DNA of 64,000 nucleotides, from NCBI GenBank assembly GCA_038496445.1, contig JALMLS010000179.1, positions 434,001 to 498,000 of the forward strand. Direction: 5' to 3'. This stretch comes from Trichosphaerium sp. ATCC 40318. Lineage: Eukaryota > Protista > Tubulinea. The notes beneath the pieces are model-generated. The model did not search any database. It saw only the letters and a program-made list of their open reading frames with translations, and was not told the origin of the DNA. The translations under genes were made by a program, and so were the position numbers. Below are positions 869-64,000 of the stretch, piece by piece. The first letter of the stretch is position 1. Every line of letters starts with the position of its first letter.

Positions 869-1138
869 TTACAACTTCATCGCCAGAGGTATGTGAGCTG
901 GTGAGCAGAGTTTTAAAGGCGAGCAGTCGAGTTCCAAGTCACCAAAGTCGAGTCTGAACTGAGAGTTTATTTCTTCTTCGCGTTTTGTCTCGTCGATTGT
1001 CGGTATGATCTCTACTCGCTCTGAGAATGTAACTTGGCCATGTATTATCGAGGGTTCGATCACAGATGTTGTTTTGCGTGAGAGGAGGTTGAATGCGCGG
1101 CGTGTAAAGGATTTGAGAGACTTGGTAAATGTAAACAT
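869..1138 (-). CDS. 89-aa cassette microprotein (basic N-terminal leader; QVTFSERVEII RVxF-like motif), copy 1
   Basis: ATG-to-TAA ORF intact in all three cassette copies. Confidence 0.65.
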   Translation of the reverse strand: MFTFTKSLKSFTRRAFNLLSRKTTSVIEPSIIHGQVTFSERVEIIPTIDETKREEEINSQFRLDFGDLELDCSPLKLCSPAHIPLAMKL

Positions 1139-1869: not shown

Positions 1870-2475
1870 ATGCTTTCTTTCATCAGAACATCTATCATCA
1901 GCGTATTCAAAAGACGTACACGCAATACAAAGGGTAAATCAAAGACTCTTGAGAAGCTTGCTCGTAAACCTCTTAATCTTGGCGCCATTGCGACAGTGCT
2001 GAAGGAGACGGCGACACAAGTGACGAACATTCACTCGGCTGGCTACGCACACTTGGGAGTCTATTCAAACGCCATCACAATCATGCCAAAGGGTCAGATA
2101 CAGCTCGGTGGTACAAACAGAGCAACAAAGATGACCAACGGTGATACCTACAAATTCCCAGACCAAGGCGATTCCATGACCACAGATGTCTCCCACATTG
2201 GTTACTTGGCTGTCAGACTGTACCTCGGCGACTACGGCGATGAATGGGTAAACATGGCAAACGAAACAGGATTCTCATACCTCACAGCTCATTACACAAA
2301 CTCTGGACGTCAGATAAATAGATTGATAGATGCCAAAGCTCCACAGACTCTCATTCATTTCGTCAAGAAGTGTTTTGAACAAAACACAACGGCCTCAGAT
2401 CTACTGGATACACAATTGATTCACTTTGCGTCAAGTGCGCGCATCACGAGTTTATCTCGTGCTTGCAGGAAATAA
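1870..2475 (+). CDS. STE20-like pseudokinase, C-lobe only (201 aa), copy 1
   Basis: IATVLKE..IHSAGYAHLGVYSNAITI..GQIQLGG aligns to IAxILxE..LHSxGxIHRDIKxxNILL..GxVKLAD. DVSHIGYLAVRLYLG matches DIWSLGITAIELAxG. FVKKCF..TASDLL matches FVxKCL..TAxELL. HRD and DFG are absent. Confidence 0.8.
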   Translation: MLSFIRTSIISVFKRRTRNTKGKSKTLEKLARKPLNLGAIATVLKETATQVTNIHSAGYAHLGVYSNAITIMPKGQIQLGGTNRATKMTNGDTYKFPDQGDSMTTDVSHIGYLAVRLYLGDYGDEWVNMANETGFSYLTAHYTNSGRQINRLIDAKAPQTLIHFVKKCFEQNTTASDLLDTQLIHFASSARITSLSRACRK

Positions 2476-15778: not shown

Positions 15779-16116
15779 ATTGCCTTTTTAAAAGGCTTTA
15801 AACGCGTGTAGTGAAAAAAAAACAACCACTACATGTTTCGAAAGTGAAAAGGAAAGAATGTTGGGGATTTTTGTTGGCTCTTTGGTTATGAAAAAAAAAC
15901 GGCTTATGTACACCATCATGTAAAAAAAATCTACAAAGTAAATTATGTTACGTCAAACAGCCTCTGTTTTTTTTGTAGTTGAGCAGATAGCCAACAAAAC
16001 CGAAAGTTGGTAAGGAGTTACATTGTTTTTTACTGTTGTTACAATATGAAAGTTGTTATTGGCTATTTTTACATTTAGTTTGGTTGGGTTTTACAAGGTG
16101 GTAAGTAGTTAGAGGT

Positions 16117-16386
16117 TTACAACTTCATCGCCAGAGGTATGTGAGCTGGTGAGCAGAGTTTTAAAGGCGAACAGTCGAGTTCCAAGTCACCAAAGTCGAG
16201 TCTGAACTGAGAGTTTATTTCTTCTTCGCGTTTTGTCTCGTCGATTGTCGGTATGATCTCTACTCGCTCTGAGAATGTAACTCGGCCATGTATTATCGAG
16301 GGTTCGACCACAGATGTTGTTTTGCGTGAGAGGAGGTTGAATGCGCGGCGTGTAAAGGATTTGAGAGACTTGGTAAATGTAGACAT
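16117..16386 (-). CDS. 89-aa cassette microprotein, copy 2 (RVTFSERVEII)
   Basis: Three amino-acid differences from copy 1; canonical RVxF in this copy. Confidence 0.65.
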   Translation of the reverse strand: MSTFTKSLKSFTRRAFNLLSRKTTSVVEPSIIHGRVTFSERVEIIPTIDETKREEEINSQFRLDFGDLELDCSPLKLCSPAHIPLAMKL

Positions 16387-17114
16387 CTGATTGCAAGCAA
16401 GATTCGTGGTTAGTTCGGTTCAAGAAGTAAGATTATGATGTTTTAAGACACTTTGGAGTCTTTAGTTTTGCAAACTGCACAAACTACATTTCTTACGCAC
16501 TCTAAAAAACATGTTGTATCGCTTGCATTTATCGGTGAGTGTGCGTCAAGAGTGCAAACAAGTCATTTTGTGTTTGTTCTCGGATTCTCAATTTCTCAAT
16601 AATTTCAGGGTATTTCCGTTATTCTCACAATAATTCTCCGTATCATACCGAGAGTCTGTTTATGGTACAACGTTATTAAAAAATGATTCTCTTCTTGTGG
16701 AGGTTCTTGGGTTTCGTTTCAGAGTAAATTTCAAGGAGATATCAGCTAAAAAAAGCAATTAAAAGTACATCATTTACTTATTTTGTTAATCCGTACTTTT
16801 CATTTTTACGTGACTGTAAAACGGGACTACAGGATGGTAGCGTCGCCAAAAGCATTTTCATCCATAAAAGTGTATTGTTGGAACAGACAAAATGTGTACA
16901 TTTGTATTTTTTCGGGCACTTTTTATTAAACTGCTACAATCCGATTTCTCCATCTAGACTAATGGTCAGTAAACGATACAGGTCTACTCATAAATCAACA
17001 TGATTTGTTCAATGCGATTTATACTATTAATGGATGGTTTCGGTGTAAAGTTAGACTTCAGTGTTTCGTTAAGTCAAAATACTAAAAACAACACAAACGA
17101 AACAACTCTTCCAA

Positions 17115-17720
17115 ATGCTTTCTTTCATCAGAACATCTATCATCAGCGTATTCAAAAGACGTACACGCAATACAAAGGGTAAATCAAAAACTCTTGAGAA
17201 GCTTGCTCGTAAACCTCTCAACCTTGGCGCCATTGCGATAGTGCTGAAGGAGACGGTGATACAGGTGACGAACATTCACTCGGCTGGCTACGCACACTTG
17301 GGAGTCTCTTCAAACGCCATCACAATCATGCCAAAGGGTCAGATACAGCTCGGTGGTACAAACAGAGCAACAAAGATGACCAATGGTGATACCTACAAAT
17401 TCCCAGACCAAGGCGATTCCATGACCACAGATGTCTCCCACATTGGTTACTTGGCTGTCAGACTGTACCTCGGCGACTATGGCGATGAATGGGTAAACAT
17501 GGCAAACGAAACAGGATTCTCATACCTCACAGCTCATTATACAAACTCTGGACGTCAGATTAATAGATTGATAGATGCCAAAGCTCCACAGACTCTCATT
17601 CATTTCGTCAAGAAGTGTTTTGAACAAAACACAACGGCATCAGATCTACTGGATACACAATTGATTCACTTTGCGTCAAGTGCAGGCATCACGAGTTTAT
17701 CTCGTGCTTACAAGAAATAA
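17115..17720 (+). CDS. STE20-like pseudokinase C-lobe, copy 2
   Basis: 201 aa, seven amino-acid differences from copy 1, frame intact. Confidence 0.8.
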   Translation: MLSFIRTSIISVFKRRTRNTKGKSKTLEKLARKPLNLGAIAIVLKETVIQVTNIHSAGYAHLGVSSNAITIMPKGQIQLGGTNRATKMTNGDTYKFPDQGDSMTTDVSHIGYLAVRLYLGDYGDEWVNMANETGFSYLTAHYTNSGRQINRLIDAKAPQTLIHFVKKCFEQNTTASDLLDTQLIHFASSAGITSLSRAYKK

Positions 17721-18135
17721 CTTCTCTTCCAACCAAAAACAAAAACTTGTATTCTAAAAAACAACTTCGTCAAAATAAATGTATTTTAGCAACACTTTCA
17801 CGTTATTTTTACCGTGTACGAGCGCTCAGTGATATTTGAAACAGCTAAAATGAATGTATTATCTCAATAGAATCAAATTCATACATAAAGTAGTTTATTT
17901 ACAAAGGCTCCAATTATGATTGGACTTGTGCATAGAAAAAAGCTACCTCAAACAAATCGATTGTTACAAGGTGCCAAAAGCCAATCCCATCCCTTTTTCT
18001 CACTAGTATACAATAATATGACAGCCCGCATTCCCCTAGTTTTTAATACCAGTATAGAACGCAGGGAAAAACCTAAATCTACCAAGGTGATCTAGATAAA
18101 GAGAGTCCTCCCTCATCGAAAAAAAAACAGAGGCT

Positions 18136-19775
18136 CTACATGTAGACTTTGATAATACTCGTTATCTGTTTTCGACAAATAGGACATGTGTCGTTCCCAG
18201 GGCGGTTTCGAAAAGCATCAGCACACATGCTGCAAAATGTGACGTGTCCACAAGGAACACATATACGATCAGCCAATGCATCAAGACAAACCTAAACGAA
18301 CCATTAATTTTTCAATTCAAAAAACATGACTGTGAATGCGAGCTGTTTTCAGTAAAAATAAGTATGAACCAATGCACCACTGAGCGTTGGGTCTTGAGAG
18401 AAAAGGATAAAAAAAGTTTTAAAGATGTATGTTTAACGTAAATGACAAGTTAAAAAACCTTTTAATTCTGTGAACGCCTAAGCTTTGCTTTGGCTTTTGT
18501 TTTGATCTACAACAACCGATTCGATTTCAAAAAAAAGTTCACGTACTCTACATGATTGTGGTCCTCCTTTTGCGTCTTCCATTTCTCTCAGTTTCTTTGA
18601 CTTTGCTAAAGACAGATTCTCAACAACACATTTGGCCTTTAAAATCTCTGCATCAAGCTGCTCTAATGTCATTTTACTATAATCTGGTACAATTGGTATT
18701 GCTACTGCGTTTGCTACTGCGTTTGCTGCTGCTGCCGTTGCTGCCGCGTTTATACGCTTAGCGTTTGCCAGTTGTTCCATACATGCGCCTATTTGTTGCT
18801 TTTGAGCGCCCAGTTGGTGTTCTTGAATCTGTATTGTGTTTTGTAGATTTTTGATCTGTTGATTAACTTGATCTCCAATTTGGTGTAAACGTGCTTTTAG
18901 AGTATTATTTTCAGCTACAGTATAATAAGCTCACCGATAGGCACGATTTAAAACTAATCTAACAAGAATAACCAAAGTTTTTTGTTTCGCGCCAAGAAGT
19001 CCCAAACTCGTACCTTTTTGCTTGTTGTACTGGGCTTCACCTATTGTAAACCTGTTTCTCTCGTTTTGAAGCCTTGAATTCGCTTCTTTTGCCTGTTGTT
19101 TGACATCATTTAACATTTTATCTTTTTGAGCTAGTTGGTCTTTCTTTTCGCGTATTTCTCTGCTAAGAGTAATGTTGTCGTCTTTTACTCTAGCCAAAAC
19201 GTTCTCAACTTCAACACGTTGGTTTCGCAAGCGTTGTGCTTCTTGAAGTAACGCTTCGTTTTTGGTTTGAAGCACTTGCTGTAGAATAAATTAGGTCGAT
19301 TCAAAACAATTTGATTTAACCGCACAATGAATTCTACTACTTCGTTGTCGGGCCTTTGCGATGTTTCCACTGTTCTAGCAGGGCTATTGAATCTTGACAA
19401 AGTTGGCGCTAATAGCAAAGCATTAGTTTTGCTAAAAACTGTCCTTGTACATGGAGCCATATCGTGTGGTGTGGGACTAGGGAATCCACGACCAAAATGG
19501 CTTTGTTGTGGAGGAAAGGGCGCAGCATTTCGTAATGGTGTTTTAGGCTTAGCGCGTAGTATACGCCTACTCTATAAGATGTTAAACAATTCAGGTATTT
19601 AGATGAGGATTGTTTTTCAAATCGCAAATACATACACGAGACGTGTCAGGGCTCATGGACGCTAAGTACGTAAGTTTTAGGTCAATTATTGATGCTTACA
19701 GTGAAGAGGTGGAGCAAATCGTTGATGAGCGCGTGCTGGTGACCCTCCGTATTCTAGTTGTCCCAGGTAGTCCAT
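18136..19775 (-). CDS. Coiled-coil + C-terminal C3HC4 RING E3 ligase, multi-exon
   Basis: Last exon reads CVCVPCGHVTFCSMCADAFRNRPGNDTCPICRKQITSIIKVYM*; long coiled-coil exons upstream. Confidence 0.8.
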
Positions 19776-28256: not shown

Positions 28257-29270
28257 CTAAAAAGTTGTACTGTTCTCCCACACTTGTCTCACGTTAATAT
28301 TGAAACGTACAGCATCACCTTCCATCCATTTGGCACAGTCTTTCCACTCTTTTGGACTTTCTTGTTCATTCAAGTATGATGGTACTGAGTTCTCCATGAT
28401 ACGTGCAACACCATGAAAACAACGTCTCGAAGAACCTGCCATTATCACTGTATCACCACTTGAAATAAAAAACGCTGTAGGCTTTGTTTTCTTTGATTCT
28501 GATCCAAGAAGAAAAATAACAGTTCCACCAAAACTACAACTTACAATAGGTTGAGAAAGGTCTTCTTCTGAATTATCTTGGTGTCCACCCATGACATGCT
28601 TAAGGCTGGTATAGTAATTGACAGTAATTGCTTGTGGGATGTAAGGAGAAGTGGATTCCAATGATTCTTTCGGTACAAAAGTCGCAAATTGTTTGGCAAG
28701 ATCTGAAAGGTCTTGAGGCATTTCTCCTCGCTTTTCTCTACTATATTCTCTTTCTGTCCATTGAAAGTGGTACCCCATATTCACCCAACGTATGTGATCC
28801 TTTAGATCATGTGTAATCTCTTTAAAACGGTAGTGCGATTCAGGAAAGTCAGCTTCTTCTTTAGGTTGTTTCAGTTTTCTAAGAGACGAAACATTCGTTG
28901 GGTTATTGATTGGAAAGTCTCTTACGCATCTCGATATCCAATATCGTTGTTGTGCAGGCGTGAAGGGATTTGGAATGAAATAAAATCCAGGATGGTCACG
29001 CAAGCCGTACATTTCTATTTTGGTTACATCGAAGTACGTTGAAGCTGTGATGCTTGATTGTGGTATAGGGACTTTAAATATACCTCTCGAGTTACCTGGA
29101 GCATAATCCTCTGGTTTTAGCTTACTAAAGTTTATAACATCTTCAAAAGAGTTTTTTGTGCGTTGAATGTTTGCTCTACGTTCTCTGCGAGATTTTGGCT
29201 CACTGTAGAACTTGTAAAACTTCTCCGATTCTCTAAAGGCGTCTGACGCCTTTGTTTTACCACTACTCAT
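28257..29270 (-). CDS. ALKBH1: AlkB homolog 1-like 2OG-Fe(II) dioxygenase
   Basis: RWVNMGYHFQW, VNYY, GGHQDxSE, SGD..MAGSSRRCFHGVARI and RFNINVRQV motifs. Confidence 0.92.
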   Translation of the reverse strand: MSSGKTKASDAFRESEKFYKFYSEPKSRRERRANIQRTKNSFEDVINFSKLKPEDYAPGNSRGIFKVPIPQSSITASTYFDVTKIEMYGLRDHPGFYFIPNPFTPAQQRYWISRCVRDFPINNPTNVSSLRKLKQPKEEADFPESHYRFKEITHDLKDHIRWVNMGYHFQWTEREYSREKRGEMPQDLSDLAKQFATFVPKESLESTSPYIPQAITVNYYTSLKHVMGGHQDNSEEDLSQPIVSCSFGGTVIFLLGSESKKTKPTAFFISSGDTVIMAGSSRRCFHGVARIMENSVPSYLNEQESPKEWKDCAKWMEGDAVRFNINVRQVWENSTTF

Positions 29271-38422: not shown

Positions 38423-38662
38423 TATTTTGACGAATGTAGTTTTAGAATTACAAACGTAAGAAAAGAAGGGAAAGAGGCATTACACAAGTTTTAAACTGTT
38501 TTTACTTTTTACATTCTTGGCTTTACCCCTTCGAATGCCAGGTTACAATGGCTCCAAGATTGAGAGGTTTACAAGCAAGTTTCTCAAGAGTTTTTGATTT
38601 ACCCTTTGTACTGCGTGTACGTCGTGTTAATGTTGACGATGATGTTCTGATGAAAGAAGCAT
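38423..38662 (-). pseudogene. Pseudogenised pseudokinase of cassette copy 3
   Basis: ATG at 38662; net -4 nt of indels gives TAA at codon 12. Homology stops after LNLGAI and resumes only in the 3' UTR. Confidence 0.85.
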
Positions 38663-39385
38663 TTGGAAGAGTTTTGTTTCGTTTGTGTTGTTTTTAGTAT
38701 TTTGACTTAACGAAACACTGAGGTCTAACTTTACGCCAAAACCATCCATTAATAGTATAAATCGCATCGAACAAACCACTTTGATTTATGAATAGACCTG
38801 TACCGTTTACTGACCATTAGTCTAGATGGAGAAATCGGATTATAATAAAAAGTGCCCGAAAAAAATGTCTGTATACACATTTTGTCTGTTCCAACAACAG
38901 ACTTTTATGATGGAACTGCTTTTGGCGGCGCTACCATCACCTGCAGTCTCGGTTTAGTCACGTAAAAAAGAAAAATACGAATACTAACAAATAAAGTAAA
39001 TGATGTATTTTTAATTGCTTTTTTTAGCTGATATCACCTTGAAATTTACTCTGAAACGAAACCCAATAACCTCCCACACCAAAGAATCATTTTTAATAAC
39101 GTTGTACCATAAACAGACTCTCGGTATGATACGGAGAATTATTGTGAGAATAACAGAAATACCCTGAAATTATTGAGAAATTGAGAATCCGAGAACAAAC
39201 TCAAAATGACTTGTTTGCACTCTTGACGCACACTCACTGATAAACGCAAGCGATACAACATGTTTTTTAGAGTGCGTAAGAAATGTAGTTTGTGCAGTTT
39301 GCAAAACTAAAGACTCCAAAGTGCCTTAAAACATCATAATCTTACTACTTGAACCGAACTAACCACGAATCTTGCTTGCAATCAG

Positions 39386-39655
39386 ATGTCTACATTTACC
39401 AAGTCTCTCAAATCCTTTACACGCCGCGCATTCAACCTCCTCTCACGCAAAACAACATCTGTGGTCGAACCCTCGATAATACATGGCCAAGTTACATTCT
39501 CAGAGCGAGTAGAGATCATACCGACAATCGACGAGACAAAACGCGAAGAAGAAATAAACTCTCAGTTCAGACTCGACTTTGGTGACTTGGAACTTGACTG
39601 TTCGCCTTTAAAACTCTGCTCACCAGCTCACATACCTCTGGCGATGAAGTTGTAA
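39386..39655 (+). CDS. 89-aa cassette microprotein, copy 3 (intact)
   Basis: One amino-acid difference from copy 2. Confidence 0.65.
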   Translation: MSTFTKSLKSFTRRAFNLLSRKTTSVVEPSIIHGQVTFSERVEIIPTIDETKREEEINSQFRLDFGDLELDCSPLKLCSPAHIPLAMKL

Positions 39656-40080
39656 ACCTCTAATTACTTACCCCACCTTGTAAAAAAAACCCAACCAAAC
39701 TAAATGTAAAAATAGCCAAAAACAACTTTCATAATGTAACAACAGTAAAAAACAATGTATACTACCAACTTTTCGTTTTTGTCTGCTACCTGCTACTACA
39801 ATAATGTAACAGCAGTAAAACACAATGTAATATAAGTAAGTCTAGCTTACAGCTACGCCAAAAGGCGGTCAAGACCACTTCCTTACAGAAATCCTCGACA
39901 AAGCAAAACGAAATGTGCTGTAATTCCAAATGGAGTAAAATACTTTGGCATTTATTGTTCCTTTTTACGCACTACAAACACTGTTCGCAGTGGATATTTT
40001 ACTCCTAACAATTCTCATTGGTGGGTATTTCTCAGAAAGTAGTAGTGGTCATCTCGTTAAAGGTTTGAACCAGTTTGTTA

Positions 40081-40722
40081 TCAATTGTCTTGGATTTTTG
40101 CCTCCTTGTCCGGCAGCATACACTTGTCACAACACATTTCTAACTCTTTACCGCGTTCAATCTCACACTGACACGTACCGCACATAAAACCTTGCACCTC
40201 TGTATTGCAATAATCGCAGCGCAACGTTTGGTAGTTTACCTCCATCTCATGCTCGTGATAATATGTGCAGCCTTGGCAAACGTACTTCCCGCAACTTGGT
40301 ACTACACAACGACTGAACACACCTCCCTCACGAACGCAGCAATAAAATGTTTCATCACAAGAATTACACGTAAATACGTCATTGATGCAGTTAAAGCAAA
40401 TGTCATTCCCACAAGCACACGCAACGGTGTATATCTTATGTACAGGCATTACACATCTATCGCATAGTATTCTTTGTTTTAGTTTGTAAAGACTCTGCCA
40501 TGTTTGATCTTCACCGAGACACGCCTTTGGATATAATTCAAGCAATTTAAACCGCCACACGCATTCAGTTGAAAACACTTGTCTTAAATGATTGTTTACG
40601 CGACCCATCGCACCTATCGATGGTCTTGGAAGTATTTGTAGAATGTGACATATAATTTCGTTTGGTAACGTTACTAGGGTCGCTTTATGGGTATGAACTT
40701 GATCTCTCACGCGCTTTTCCAT
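40081..40722 (-). CDS. F-box + Cys-rich (zinc-binding) protein, paralog A
   Basis: LVTLPNEIICHILQIL F-box and many CxxC pairs; intronless. Probable 1-nt loss in an A-run near the end; the corrected frame would stop at 40049. Confidence 0.8.
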   Translation of the reverse strand: MEKRVRDQVHTHKATLVTLPNEIICHILQILPRPSIGAMGRVNNHLRQVFSTECVWRFKLLELYPKACLGEDQTWQSLYKLKQRILCDRCVMPVHKIYTVACACGNDICFNCINDVFTCNSCDETFYCCVREGGVFSRCVVPSCGKYVCQGCTYYHEHEMEVNYQTLRCDYCNTEVQGFMCGTCQCEIERGKELEMCCDKCMLPDKEAKIQDN

Positions 40723-47053: not shown

Positions 47054-47803
47054 ATGGAGAAACGTACCAGAGATCATATAAACGCCAATGACGCCACAAT
47101 TACGTCACTTCCAAACGAAATTGTTATTGAAATACTGCAAATGCTCCCATTAGAGTCAATAGGCTCACTGTGTAACGCAAACAAACAATTACAAAAGCTA
47201 TTTTCATCAGAGACACTGTGGATGTATTTGGCGCACTTTGAGTGTCCGTGTATAGAGTCTCTTGACGAAGTAGACGCAGATACATGGAAAAGCTTTTTTA
47301 TCTCCCTACTTGACTTCACCTGCCGTATCTGCAGCGAAGTGAATCCCTTTAAGGACAGTGTAATATGTGGATGTGGTCACTACGTTTGCTACCCACTATG
47401 CAGCGCTTGGGACGACCTTACATGTAATTCTTGTGACAAAACATTTTATTGCAGCTGTACTCACAAAGATCCTGAAAGATTCGGAGACAGAAAATATCAA
47501 CAATGTGCTACTTGTCAAAACTATGTTTGTAGAAAATGCTATTTGAAATGGTATATCTATCACGATAAGGGTAAGGATATCTTTCGTTGTGCTCATTGCA
47601 ATGTGCAGTTGAACAGAGTGCATAGTTGTATGTGTACTAAGTGCCAGTACGAAGTTGAAGTAAGAGGCAAGGTGCTTGATGTTTGTTGCGACAAGTGCGT
47701 TGTACCAGACAAGGAATCTATCCACCCAAAGCAATTCATAACCAATTGGTTCAAGCCATGTAAAGAGACAAACACCAGCGATAACGCAATTGAAATAAAA
47801 TAA
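47054..47803 (+). CDS. F-box + Cys-rich protein, paralog B
   Basis: ITSLPNEIVIEILQML. Shares MEKRxRD, TCNSCDxTFYC and CCDKCxxPDKE with paralog A. Confidence 0.82.
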   Translation: MEKRTRDHINANDATITSLPNEIVIEILQMLPLESIGSLCNANKQLQKLFSSETLWMYLAHFECPCIESLDEVDADTWKSFFISLLDFTCRICSEVNPFKDSVICGCGHYVCYPLCSAWDDLTCNSCDKTFYCSCTHKDPERFGDRKYQQCATCQNYVCRKCYLKWYIYHDKGKDIFRCAHCNVQLNRVHSCMCTKCQYEVEVRGKVLDVCCDKCVVPDKESIHPKQFITNWFKPCKETNTSDNAIEIK

Positions 47804-54386: not shown

Positions 54387-57276
54387 ATGGGCGCTATCAT
54401 CAGCTATTTCTATAGCCTTGTATTTCCAGTATTCAAACCGCCAGTAGATGGTTAGCATAAAAATACCTTAACCATGTACTAATATTGCTATAGATGATAC
54501 ACCAGACAGCGATAACAAAACCAGTGATGTACGTATTTGACAGGCCTATTTCTAGAACCGTACGTTAACAAGCGCTGCAGGAGCCTACTACTACGCCTAA
54601 AACTACGCCAAAAAGCACCGACGACAAACCCTCCAAACCCAACGAAGGGAAAAACGACGAGCCAACGCGAGACCCTGTTACACCTGCTAGTATGTTCGAT
54701 TTAAAGCGCGATTTTGTTTGTTTAGTTAGTACTCACTCACACTTACAGAAACAGACAAGAATGAGACAGCGCCAGCACCAGAGAAAACGTACGCCATTTT
54801 TGCATCAAAAAACTAAAAATTAGATTCAAAATAGCCTTTCTGTTCCTAATTCGTCTTAGTAAACCAATACCATCTACAGCAGTAAACGCTGAAGAGAAGA
54901 AACCAAAAGTAGACGAGTACGCATTATTTTTTCGCCAATTGTATTAAAACTATCAAACTTCGCAAAGTCTTCAAATCACGTCTAGTTTAAACCGGTGCTC
55001 GCATTCCTATCAATTATAACTCACGATCATTGTTTTTGTTTTCGAACCGTCATCGACTAATTTCGGCCTCTAGATCCCAGTCTAAAGAAGATACTACACC
55101 TAAAGTAACACAAGAAACAACAACCAAGCCACAAGCTGAACCTAAACCTGAAATTATCCCAAAACACGTAGATGAGGAAGAAATTCTTCAAAAAGTCCTA
55201 GACACTGAAATTCCTAAAGATGAACCTACTACTATCGCAGCCGCTCAAATCAAACCTGATGTTCTATTAACTCAACCTGCAGTATTAATTGCTTCTCTAC
55301 CTGTCACAATAGCCGAAGAAGACATACTCACAACTGCTCCATGTGTTCTAGAGTCTGATTCTCTTGCTACAATACCTTCATTCGTATTTGAACAAGATAT
55401 TGAAGAAGAAGAGCCTGTTCTAGCATCAAAAGCACCTCCTCAAGTTGAAGAACCATCAAAAGTCGCGCCAGCACCTCTTAAAGAAGAAAAAGCGTCCGTA
55501 GAAGTACAGAAAGACGTTCAACCTATTGTCGTGTCTGAACCTAAAAAAGAAGAACCTGCAAAACCAAAAATCGTACATGGACCACCATCTACTGTACAAC
55601 ACGTACTCTACTACAACGCCCTCAAATCTCAGAAATTTCCTGTATTGAAGGAACCAAAAAAAGTAGAAGAACCAAAGAAAGCTCCTACACCAGAACCTGT
55701 TGAAAAGAAGGAAGATATCAAACCTGCCTCTGAACCAGTAAAAGAACCTGAAGTAGAAGCGAAGAAACCAGAAGATACAAAACCAGTAGTCAAGCCTTCA
55801 ACAGTACAACATGTTCTATACTACAGCGCGATCGCATCCACAAAATTCCCTAACGCTCCTGTGACCGAGAATAAGGTTCTAACAGACCTTGCTGATGCGC
55901 TTGCTGAGAAGTCAGCAACTCCTGAAAAGAATGAGGTATTGACAGATCTTGCTGATGCTCTTGCCGAGAAGTCTGCTGCTCCCGACACGACGGTTACAGA
56001 GAAGGCTGGAAAGCCTTCTACAGTCCAACATATAACATACTACAACGCACTTAAATCTCAAAAGTTCCCTCAAGCTGTTGCGAAGAAAGAAGTCGTCGAA
56101 GAACCTAAAGTGGAACCAGTCGCAGAAGTATCAGAGGTAGAACCTGTTGTATCAACTCCAGCACCTCAAGCTGCAGTCGAGGAACCAAAACAAGCTGTCG
56201 AAGAAGTAAAACAAACTCCTGCAGTAGCTCCACCATCAACAGTACAACATGTACTCTATTACAGCTCAACTGCTTCAGCGAAGTTCCCAGCTGAAAATAT
56301 GAAGACTGAAGAACCAAAGGACACACTCGCCCCTGCAGTAGTTGCCCCTGTAGAATCCCCTGTAGCAGTTGTCGCGCCTGTTGAAGCGCCTGTGGCCATT
56401 GCAGCTGTCGCAGCCGAATCAGAAGTCCTCGCTTCAATTCCAACACCAGAACCAGCAGTTGAAGAACAAAAGAAGCCAGAAGAAAAATCACCTGTCGATG
56501 TTCCACCATCAACAGTCCAACACGTACTCTACTACAGCTCCACGTCATCAGCGAAATTCCCTGCTGAAACGATGGAAACCCCAACCACTCCAGATGTTGT
56601 AGATACAATAGAACAGCCTAAAGAAGATGTTATTGTTCCAGTATCACAACCGGCAACGGTTGCTCCAGTAGAGGAGTTAAAGGCTGCAGTTGTATCTCAA
56701 GATGTTGACAAACTCGCTGCTAGCCCAAGCGCCGAACCTGAAGAACCTGTACAAGAAAAGCAGGCACCACCTAGTACAGTCCAACATGTTGCATACTACA
56801 ACGCTCTCAAATCCGTCAAGTATCCAACTGCTCCAGAACCAGAGACAAAATCCCAAGAGGCAAAGAAACCTGTGACTGAAACAGTTGCTTCTCAAGCACC
56901 TCCAGCAGTTGATGATCTAGTCAAACCCGTTGAAGAGAAAACAGTTCCAGTTATCACAGAAGAAACAAAAGAATCGAACAAGGATAATCAAGATACACGC
57001 GTGTCTACCGTTCAACATACAGTGTATTACGGTGTTACCTCAGCTGCAAAGTTCAAGAACGTTGAAGAGCAAAATACAAAGAAAGAACCAAGCCCAAAAG
57101 CGATTGAAACAAAAGCGCCTGAAACAAAAGTAGCAGCTCCTCCTCAAGAGCAAGCTTCTAACCCAGTTGTTATTTCGAAACCTTCGAAGGCACAACTATT
57201 GAATATATGGGGTAAAGGAGACTCTATAATTGCGCCAGTAACCGCACCAAAGTTGGTTCCTCTTGATATGTGGTGA
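54387..57276 (+). CDS. Acidic, Pro/Glu-rich disordered protein with seven PSTVQHxxYY..KFP repeats
   Basis: MGAIIS start, several short 5' exons and a long last exon (ORF 55030-57276). Confidence 0.85.
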
Positions 57277-62606: not shown

Positions 62607-64000
62607 TTAGTCAATCACAACCAACTTCTCGAACTCCTCAGTATCGATTGCTTTTTGAATCATAAGCCAAGGTGTTAGTTCAACACCATCCAAGAATAAG
62701 TTCAACATAGCAGGTGAAAAACCGGATACCATTGCTACGCCAGGCTCTTCCTTTGTTACAGGAATAGAGCTAGAATGACGCAAGTTCCAGTAAACGATTT
62801 GAGGCATATCGAATCCCATGGCTCTAAACTTAGACTTGATATCTTCGTGGCTTGTTCTGAAGGCACCAGTTTGAGCAGCGTCGAATTCCATGTCACTAAA
62901 GACAAAGATTGTTTCTGGCATGTCGTCAGCGTCGACTTTTCCGGTCTTGGCGAAATCAAGTAGTAGATCAAACACAGCAGCGAAGTTTGTGTTCATGCCC
63001 CAAGGCATATTTTTGATAGAGGTAACACGGTCTCTTAGGCTTTTTCCTTGTACTTTGAAGAAAGAAGGAGTACTGTGGAAAGTAATAACGTGATTTTTGA
63101 ATGGACCCTCTGTGACCTCGCTCAAGATAAGACCAAGAGCGATAGCTACTTGCATAGGTATACCGCTCATAGATCCAGATACGTCTACGACAGAAAGGCA
63201 CTTTGGTAAGTTCGAGGCAGCCTTGATTTTGTTGACTTTGTCGGTCCATTGGAGTTCTAGGGCTTGACCGTCTGCGACATTTCCGGCCAATAGTTTCTCG
63301 ATGATAACATGCGGCAAGATAGCTCCAGATGCGATTGTGGCTGTTCCAGCTTTGACTGCATCCAAGTACGCTTGATAACGCTCTTCGTCGTGTTTAGCGA
63401 AGATTTTTCTGTTATTCGCCATACACACAGAAGGGACACGTGTGTATACGATTTTCTTCCATTGATTCGCAGACATATGTACTTCAGGGACGCATGTGTA
63501 CTTTCTCATTGCCGTGAGCGCTTTACGGTATTTATAGAGGCACGCTGGTTCTACGTAAGGTGCACCTTCTTCTCTTTTCTTTGGCTCAGGACAGTCAGGG
63601 AACATGAGCATAGCGATTTTTTGGGCGAGTTTAAACTTCTTGTCGTGTTTCTTGCCTGGAGAAGGCGCCCATTTGGCGCAAAGTGAGATTTTCGCTTTTT
63701 GCTCCATTAGGTCGAAGTCCTCCTTGAGTTGTGTGGCGAATAGTTGTACTACAGCTTCGATTACGCGAGGAAAGTTTTTATCGTTTGAAATATCTTCGCC
63801 TTCTCCCTTTAGGGTTTTTCCAGAGCGTTCTGTAGGTTTAAGGAGTAGTTCGAGTAAATCCTTCCAGTAGCCAAACATAGGAACGCATTTGAGGTTGGCG
63901 ATGAAAGTGTCTGGGTGAGTAGCCAAGAGCCACGTTAGGCAGGTGTAAAAGCATTTTCGCTCGTTCTTTCCGTTTCTTACATCACGTAGCTGAAATATGA
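62607..64000 (-). CDS. DUF2828 / vWA-domain (TROVE-like) protein, 5' truncated
   Basis: GYWKDLL, SLCAKWAPS, YTRVPS, DVSGSM, FVFSDMEFD and IVYWNLR motifs; continues past the window end. Confidence 0.9.
   Translation of the reverse strand, partial: IFQLRDVRNGKNERKCFYTCLTWLLATHPDTFIANLKCVPMFGYWKDLLELLLKPTERSGKTLKGEGEDISNDKNFPRVIEAVVQLFATQLKEDFDLMEQKAKISLCAKWAPSPGKKHDKKFKLAQKIAMLMFPDCPEPKKREEGAPYVEPACLYKYRKALTAMRKYTCVPEVHMSANQWKKIVYTRVPSVCMANNRKIFAKHDEERYQAYLDAVKAGTATIASGAILPHVIIEKLLAGNVADGQALELQWTDKVNKIKAASNLPKCLSVVDVSGSMSGIPMQVAIALGLILSEVTEGPFKNHVITFHSTPSFFKVQGKSLRDRVTSIKNMPWGMNTNFAAVFDLLLDFAKTGKVDADDMPETIFVFSDMEFDAAQTGAFRTSHEDIKSKFRAMGFDMPQIVYWNLRHSSSIPVTKEEPGVAMVSGFSPAMLNLFLDGVELTPWLMIQKAIDTEEFEKLVVID

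Follow-up and report, generated by a model that had tools for sequence, protein, structure and literature searches.

Our analyses support, at a confidence just short of even, a best overall explanation in which a locally duplicated orphan open reading frame (ORF) of 89 amino acids, if translated, yields a protein that would dock onto PP1 through its tail. Three copies of this small ORF occur in the window, i.e. the whole stretch of 64,000 nucleotides that was analysed. Residues 35-45 read RVTFSERVEII in copy 2 and QVTFSERVEII in copies 1 and 3, codon 35 being CGA (Arg) in the former and CAA (Gln) in the latter two, exactly as the original prediction had stated. The same prediction likened the motif to the PP1-docking segments of GADD34 and ICP34.5, and the peptides it quoted are real: GADD34 552-568 contains an RVxF element (KVRF) at 555-558 and a PhiPhi[xF] element (VHFL) at 564-567 (PMC12723162), and binding to PPP1CA has been reported for an ICP34.5 peptide that includes RVRFSPHVRV (bioRxiv 10.1101/2025.06.04.657796). 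The pattern on which that comparison was built stands, copy 2 carrying the full RVxF-x5-PhiPhi arrangement with the spacing found in GADD34, whereas the implied family kinship does not, as no homology of the small ORF to PPP1R15 was detected by Pfam at E<=10, by phmmer against 1.84 billion representative proteins or in the PDB.

A tblastn search of the window returned exactly three matches to the small ORF, at 16120-16386 (-), 872-1138 (-) and 39386-39652 (+), with 96.6-100% identity among the copies. Besides codon 35, the copies differ at two residues changed in copy 1 (S2F and V27I) and at two synonymous sites. An in-frame stop lies 11 codons 5' of the ATG in all three copies, which excludes a longer ORF by upstream extension without splicing; both the small ORF and its neighbour, an ORF of 201 amino acids, were taken as single exons. 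These two ORFs together form the duplicated unit, lying head-to-head on opposite strands 728 bp apart (Table 1).

Self-comparison showed that the extents of segment copies 1 and 3 both fall within that of copy 2. The ends differ between the three segment copies and carry neither terminal inverted nor terminal direct repeats, which points to a recent local segmental duplication rather than to a mobile element, and rules out a transposon origin of the unit. The three copies thus stem from a recent local segmental duplication, through which the pair would have been amplified, giving two complete copies and a third that is inverted and truncated and retains the small ORF alone. The spacer between the divergent ORFs is heterogeneous: the ~300 nt adjoining the small ORF (16387-16689) show low divergence, with 13 of 303 columns variable, whereas 16690-16960 is strongly diverged with non-triplet indels and is consequently regarded as non-coding. 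Six copy-2-specific changes are clustered within 8 bp of the spacer (16691-16698), which points to one complex mutation, e.g. a micro-inversion or slippage, and not to independent substitutions. A 22-nt inverted match (82%) between the last codons of the small ORF (16115-16136) and the interior of the kinase-like ORF (17477-17498) is probably due to chance.

Table 1. Positions in the window of the duplicated segments, their ORFs and the features of the predicted small protein
Feature	Position	Strand or orientation	Remarks
Duplicated segment, copy 1	780-2534	direct	96% match to 16030-17783
Duplicated segment, copy 2, most complete	15970..17783		self-comparison
Duplicated segment, copy 3, truncated	38546-39804	inverted	92-94% match to 15970-17235
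Small ORF, copy 1	869..1138	(-)	Gln35, plus S2F and V27I; motif at 1004-1036
Small ORF, copy 2	16117..16386	(-)	89 aa plus stop; Arg35 form; ATG start, TAA at low end
Small ORF, copy 3	39386..39655	(+)	Gln35; orientation opposite to that of copies 1 and 2; motif at 39488-39520
Motif of copy 2, residues 35-45, RVTFSERVEII (RVxF-x5-PhiPhi)	16252..16284	(-)	variable base at 16283
Predicted basic amphipathic helix, residues 3-22	16321..16380	(-)	AlphaFold2
Spacer between the divergent ORFs, 728 bp	16387..17114		low divergence at 16387-16689
201-aa kinase-like ORF, copy 1	1870..2475	(+)	dN/dS 0.20 against copy 2
201-aa kinase-C-lobe-like ORF, copy 2	17115..17720	(+)	HxD = H-L-G, DFG = L-G-G; no N-lobe
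Remnant of kinase-like ORF, copy 3	38546..38666	(-)	three frameshifting deletions; homology stops after about codon 40

The window has a GC content of about 38% and a eukaryotic gene content, including an ENTH/epsin exon, mitochondrial Hsp70 and CCT exons, and F-box, LRR, MORN and AlkB-like genes. In the one gene examined for introns, that of mitochondrial Hsp70, two GT-AG introns of about 75 and 120 nt were found. Matches to the proteins of the window come from protists, metagenomes and insects and share 28-43% identity with them, while none of the window's proteins is itself on record in the searched databases. Among the single-exon genes, an AlkB/ALKBH1-like 2OG-Fe(II) oxygenase (28260-29270, minus strand) has its best relatives in metagenomes, transcriptomes or insects at just 38-43% identity, the top match being about 40% identical, suggesting that the source lineage is poorly sampled. 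Directly flanking segment copy 2 (18136-18276, 18478-18780 and 18931-19275, minus strand), coiled-coil exons are followed downstream by a RING-finger-like C-terminal exon (C-x2-C ... C-P-I-C-R), and together they probably form an E3 ligase gene. Two paralogous single-exon genes near segment copy 3 (40081-40722, minus strand, and 47054-47803, plus strand) each code for a protein with an F-box at its N-terminus and, after it, a Cys-rich region resembling a zinc finger, and this pair looks like a local gene-family expansion. Further along, a 748-aa ORF with abundant Pro, Glu, Lys and Val (55030-57276, plus strand) comprises about nine copies of P-S-T-V-Q-H-V-x-Y-Y followed by K-F-P, together with a 145-nt direct repeat (56152-56296 and 56434-56569), and a 439-aa ORF (62607-63926, minus strand) strongly matches DUF2828, DUF7788 and a VWA-like domain (E about 1e-59 to 1e-67).

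Relatives of the small ORF were sought in several collections. Pfam at E<=10 gave no match for any of the three copies, PP1c_bdg included, nor did NCBIfam at E<=10 for copy 2, the PDB, or scans of metagenome, viral and prokaryote contigs. A word-indexed search of 5.8 billion proteins, limited by length, was equally empty, and the claim of absence is backed by a full HMMER scan (phmmer) of 1.84 billion representative proteins with no length window. The single match from that scan (P0001, E=6e-4) is a 775-aa internally repetitive protein, many repeats of which each align weakly to residues 3-36, with the motif outside; it was rejected as spurious. A likeness of G-R-V-T-F-S-E to the EF-hand half-loop of calmodulin (E=2, Ca-ligand positions missing) was attributed to chance, and shared ancestry of the basic N-termini of the two divergent ORFs was not significant (P=0.07). 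Beyond the three paralogues, which are 1-2% diverged, no homologue was found in any searched collection, and on these searches the small ORF is a lineage-specific orphan of a single exon.

Evidence that the small ORF codes is moderate, and translation is slightly the favoured outcome. The principal alternative is that it constitutes a chance frame in non-coding DNA, which would belong to the kinase-like gene as promoter-proximal sequence, divergent transcript or regulatory block; the frame would then be open since the duplicates are young, gene conversion or non-coding constraint would preserve the similarity, and RVTF would be meaningless. We regard this as possible, although somewhat doubtful. 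Variable columns amount to 5 of 270 in the small ORF, where indels are absent, against 72 of 735 in the spacer, where they are many (Fisher P=6e-6). On the three-copy tree, these five columns correspond to three non-synonymous and two synonymous changes. At the spacer rate 15 non-synonymous changes would be expected (P=2e-4), and 8 at that of the conserved 300-nt stretch next to the ORF (P=0.04), while synonymous sites show no depletion, a difference that argues against a chance frame even beside its most conserved surroundings. In favour of such a frame, dN/dS within the small ORF is not significantly below 1 (3 versus 2 changes, P=0.6), and the low-divergence block reaches ~300 nt past the ORF, which is not significantly better conserved than these 300 nt upstream (P=0.15), so that a tract of gene conversion, or a non-coding block that is regulatory or transcribed, would fit too.

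Length and openness of the frame are also what chance would provide: about 12 ATG-initiated ORFs of at least 89 aa would arise in 64 kb of random sequence with the same composition, and with only five substitutions separating the three copies the frame would remain open by default. The absence of relatives from the searched databases, the chance frequency of the motif (see below) and the lack of a conserved canonical poly(A) signal for the small ORF point the same way, the start context being uninformative. Against these stand the codon-usage score, which at +0.12 to +0.14 is the highest of the six frames and falls inside the range of the window's confirmed genes, and the persistence of an intact small ORF in copy 3 although the adjacent kinase-like ORF decayed there. 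Neither strand is predicted to form a stable RNA structure over the small ORF (fold z = +1.3 and +0.4), and Rfam and tRNA searches were empty at this position, which leaves a structured non-coding RNA unsupported and adds to the case against non-coding DNA.

The putative docking motif was assessed against published patterns and against chance. Copy 2 (R-V-T-F) matches the loose pattern [RK]-x(0,1)-[VI]-{P}-[FW], whereas copies 1 and 3 (G-Q-V-T-F) do not, as they have no Arg or Lys within two residues of the Val; human PNUTS has TVTW at this site, so a basic first residue is not obligatory. The PhiPhi pair (I44/I45) lies five residues past F38 in all three copies, a spacing shared with V564-H565 of GADD34 and with the Ile pair of NIPP1. 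The stringent consensus [KR][KR][ACHKMNQRSTV]V[CHKNQRST][FW] matched none of them, the residues before Val being H-G-R or H-G-Q; NIPP1 (N-S-R-V-T-F) does not match it either, and binding of the small ORF product is therefore not excluded on this ground. Among composition-matched shuffles of the small protein, the loose pattern occurred in 17% (Wakula form) or 30% (ELM form) and RVxF-x5-8-PhiPhi in 5%, while the ORFs of the window contain 0.15 matches per 89 aa and about 25% of all proteins have been reported to contain the loose motif (PMC4794898). The loose RVxF in the small ORF does not exceed chance expectation. A tighter, NIPP1-like pattern was recovered in 0.03% of the shuffles, a figure to be read in the light of the pattern having been defined after the sequence was known.

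The nearest published match of the copy 2 motif is not found in GADD34 or ICP34.5 but in the PP1-binding segment of human NIPP1 (PPP1R8), residues ~196-210, which includes the peptide RVTFSEDDEII and has nine of these 11 residues in common with copy 2 (R, V, T, F, S and E, then E, I and I). In both sequences five residues separate the Phe from the Ile pair, and both motifs lie in a disordered context. NIPP1 differs in having an FHA domain, which the small ORF lacks, in a polybasic stretch ahead of the motif, where copy 2 has V-V-E-P-S-I-I-H-G, and in the Arg at the first motif position, which is Gln in copies 1 and 3. The two proteins show no likeness outside these 11 residues, and the resemblance is one of short linear motifs, convergent or fortuitous, and not homology. 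Members of PPP1R15 (GADD34, CReP and HSV ICP34.5; Pfam PP1c_bdg) also resemble the small ORF, in that S-E-basic-V comes after RVxF and a hydrophobic pair stands five residues past the Phe; their motif is less identical to copy 2 than that of NIPP1, and the small ORF is far shorter and misses their eIF2alpha-recruiting C-terminal region.

The NIPP1 peptide displaces PP1 partners (PMC2587467), and its Kd for PP1 is about 250 nM (bioRxiv 10.64898/2026.09.09.750541). Crystallography of a derivative of it placed the Arg in contact with PP1 Asp242 and both Val and Phe in buried positions, with the terminal Ile touching Leu296 (PMC3531619). Its two Ile are essential, and so is, for potency, the polybasic stretch ahead of RVTF (PMC3531619), of which copy 2 has no equivalent. 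A Glu two residues after the Phe, as present in the small ORF, favours PP1 binding (PMC10698503). The copy 2 peptide would probably bind PP1 in vitro, and the Gln copies should bind more weakly because the Asp242 contact is lost; a physiological PP1 role for the small ORF is, nevertheless, unlikely.

If the small ORF is translated, for which the chances seem a little better than even, its product would carry a basic amphipathic helix at its N-terminus (residues 3-22), followed by a tail that is acidic and disordered. Single-sequence AlphaFold2 placed a helix at residues 3-22 (pLDDT ~70) and no secondary structure beyond residue 22, with pLDDT <50 at residues 24-39 and 41-43. These intervals cover most of the motif, which is thus predicted to sit in a disordered, accessible stretch, although this evidence of disorder is weak because the model was built without an alignment. 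In the explanation that we prefer, the acidic tail would dock onto the PP1 catalytic subunit with V36 and F38 in the RVxF pockets and I44 and I45 in the PhiPhi site, Arg35 of copy 2 would pair with Asp242 of PP1 just as the Arg of the NIPP1-derived peptide does, and the product would be a minimal PP1 interactor, acting as a competitor, a tether or a substrate. Inhibitor-1/DARPP-32, inhibitor-2 and inhibitor-3 resemble this predicted protein in being small and mostly disordered, with an RVxF-type motif and a basic Ser/Thr-rich part nearby, although they have no detectable sequence relationship to it. As in such small disordered PP1 regulators, the basic Ser/Thr-rich sequence near the RVxF-type motif of the predicted protein could be phosphorylated. 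Inspection of the small-ORF translation revealed no SILK, MyPhoNE or Fxx[RK]x[RK] motif. In the C-terminal tail, S-P-L-K is followed by a second C-S-P (residues 73-78; 16153-16170, minus strand), and we take the S-P-L-K found there to be a full proline-directed (CDK-type) consensus.

The N-terminus of the predicted protein admits another reading, in which the small ORF encodes an organelle-targeted, probably mitochondrial, protein: the first ~25 residues would be a cleavable presequence, the mature product an acidic peptide of ~65 aa, and RVTF incidental. A basic, Ser/Thr-rich, acid-free amphipathic N-terminus bears the classical hallmarks of a presequence, and it would take the protein away from PP1. 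The first 27 residues of the small ORF include six Lys or Arg, ten Ser or Thr and no Asp or Glu (net charge +6), with a hydrophobic moment of up to 0.69 and the helix predicted at residues 3-22; the rest of the protein is acidic. Basic amphipathic N-termini, however, occur in membrane-binding and nuclear proteins too, and the mature part has no likeness to known mitochondrial proteins, so that we consider mitochondrial targeting improbable.

As for the Arg/Gln difference at residue 35, it is most simply understood as one of five ordinary substitutions between young paralogues and not as an adaptive tuning device. Parsimony favours Gln as ancestral and Arg as derived in copy 2, but the change between CGA and CAA is a CpG transition, which makes the direction given by parsimony insecure; 12 of the 48 transitions between copies are at CpG, and CpG is barely depleted overall (o/e 0.93). 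The Arg also creates an R-x-T site within the RVTF of copy 2, and phosphorylation within RVxF reduces PP1 binding (PMC10698503).

The ORF that faces the small one is probably a real gene, in view of the purifying selection detected between its copies 1 and 2 (dN/dS 0.20, P=0.0014), and a canonical AATAAA lies at about 17775, ~55 nt past its stop. All 12 of its 12 PDB matches were kinases or pseudokinases, at sub-threshold E values of 0.14-0.76. They comprised STRADalpha, Myt1, BPK1 and 'protein kinase 6', all aligning query residues 35-88 to subdomains VIa-VII, and STRADalpha gave a second, collinear match in subdomain XI. In these sub-threshold alignments the ORF begins near helix E, the Asp of HxD is replaced by Gly and DFG reads L-G-G. 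The likeness to the C-lobes of STRADalpha, Myt1 and BPK1 has no counterpart in Pfam, where no family including Pkinase matched; neither the word-indexed protein search nor the contig scans returned homologues, and the AlphaFold2 model (pLDDT 37) was too poor for a fold search. No N-lobe (Gly-rich loop, VAIK Lys) was found upstream, and none is considered to be encoded there because the 728-bp spacer holds short ORFs only and has non-triplet indels between the two intact copies. On sequence grounds, the ORF is best described as a divergent kinase-C-lobe-like protein, which would necessarily be inactive as a kinase. The original prediction had called this neighbour a dead kinase; the C-lobe likeness and the loss of both the catalytic Asp and the DFG Asp agree with that label, whereas the E values of 0.14-0.76, the empty Pfam search and the missing N-lobe leave the assignment to kinases less secure than was implied.

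It had further been proposed that PP1 is recruited by the microprotein, which would form a compact phospho-signalling module together with the dead kinase beside it, and that the Arg/Gln difference is selected to tune PP1 affinity; this model now appears very improbable. The head-to-head arrangement across a common spacer, the co-duplication in two copies, and the purifying selection on a kinase-like ORF that lacks the catalytic Asp and the DFG Asp are consistent with a module, as are the contact of an Arg at the same motif position with PP1 Asp242 (PMC3531619) and the reported precedent of a PP1-binding pseudokinase, Plasmodium pTKL (PMC6544628). In copy 3, however, the small ORF persists beside a kinase-like ORF that is frameshifted and truncated, which weakens the idea of an obligate module; the kinase assignment itself has the limits given above, and nothing indicates that the two products interact. 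The supposed tuning consists of a single change, the polarity of which is clouded by its being a CpG transition, and five substitutions are too few for a test of positive selection. More improbable still is the reading that the small ORF encodes a minimal PP1 subunit, newborn or evolving very fast, that was co-amplified with a pseudokinase consisting of a C-lobe only, the two sharing one bidirectional promoter. Arg35 would in that case act doubly, through the Asp242 contact and as a basophilic, Aurora-type R-x-T site, making copy 2 tight but phospho-switched off and the Gln copies weak and constitutive.

If the small ORF proves to be both translated and PP1-binding, it would constitute a very small PP1 interactor without detectable ancestry, and would show how a working phosphatase-docking protein can originate and diversify while its copies stay within a few percent of each other in sequence. 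For now, the case illustrates how easily a perfect-looking RVxF appears in an unverified small ORF.
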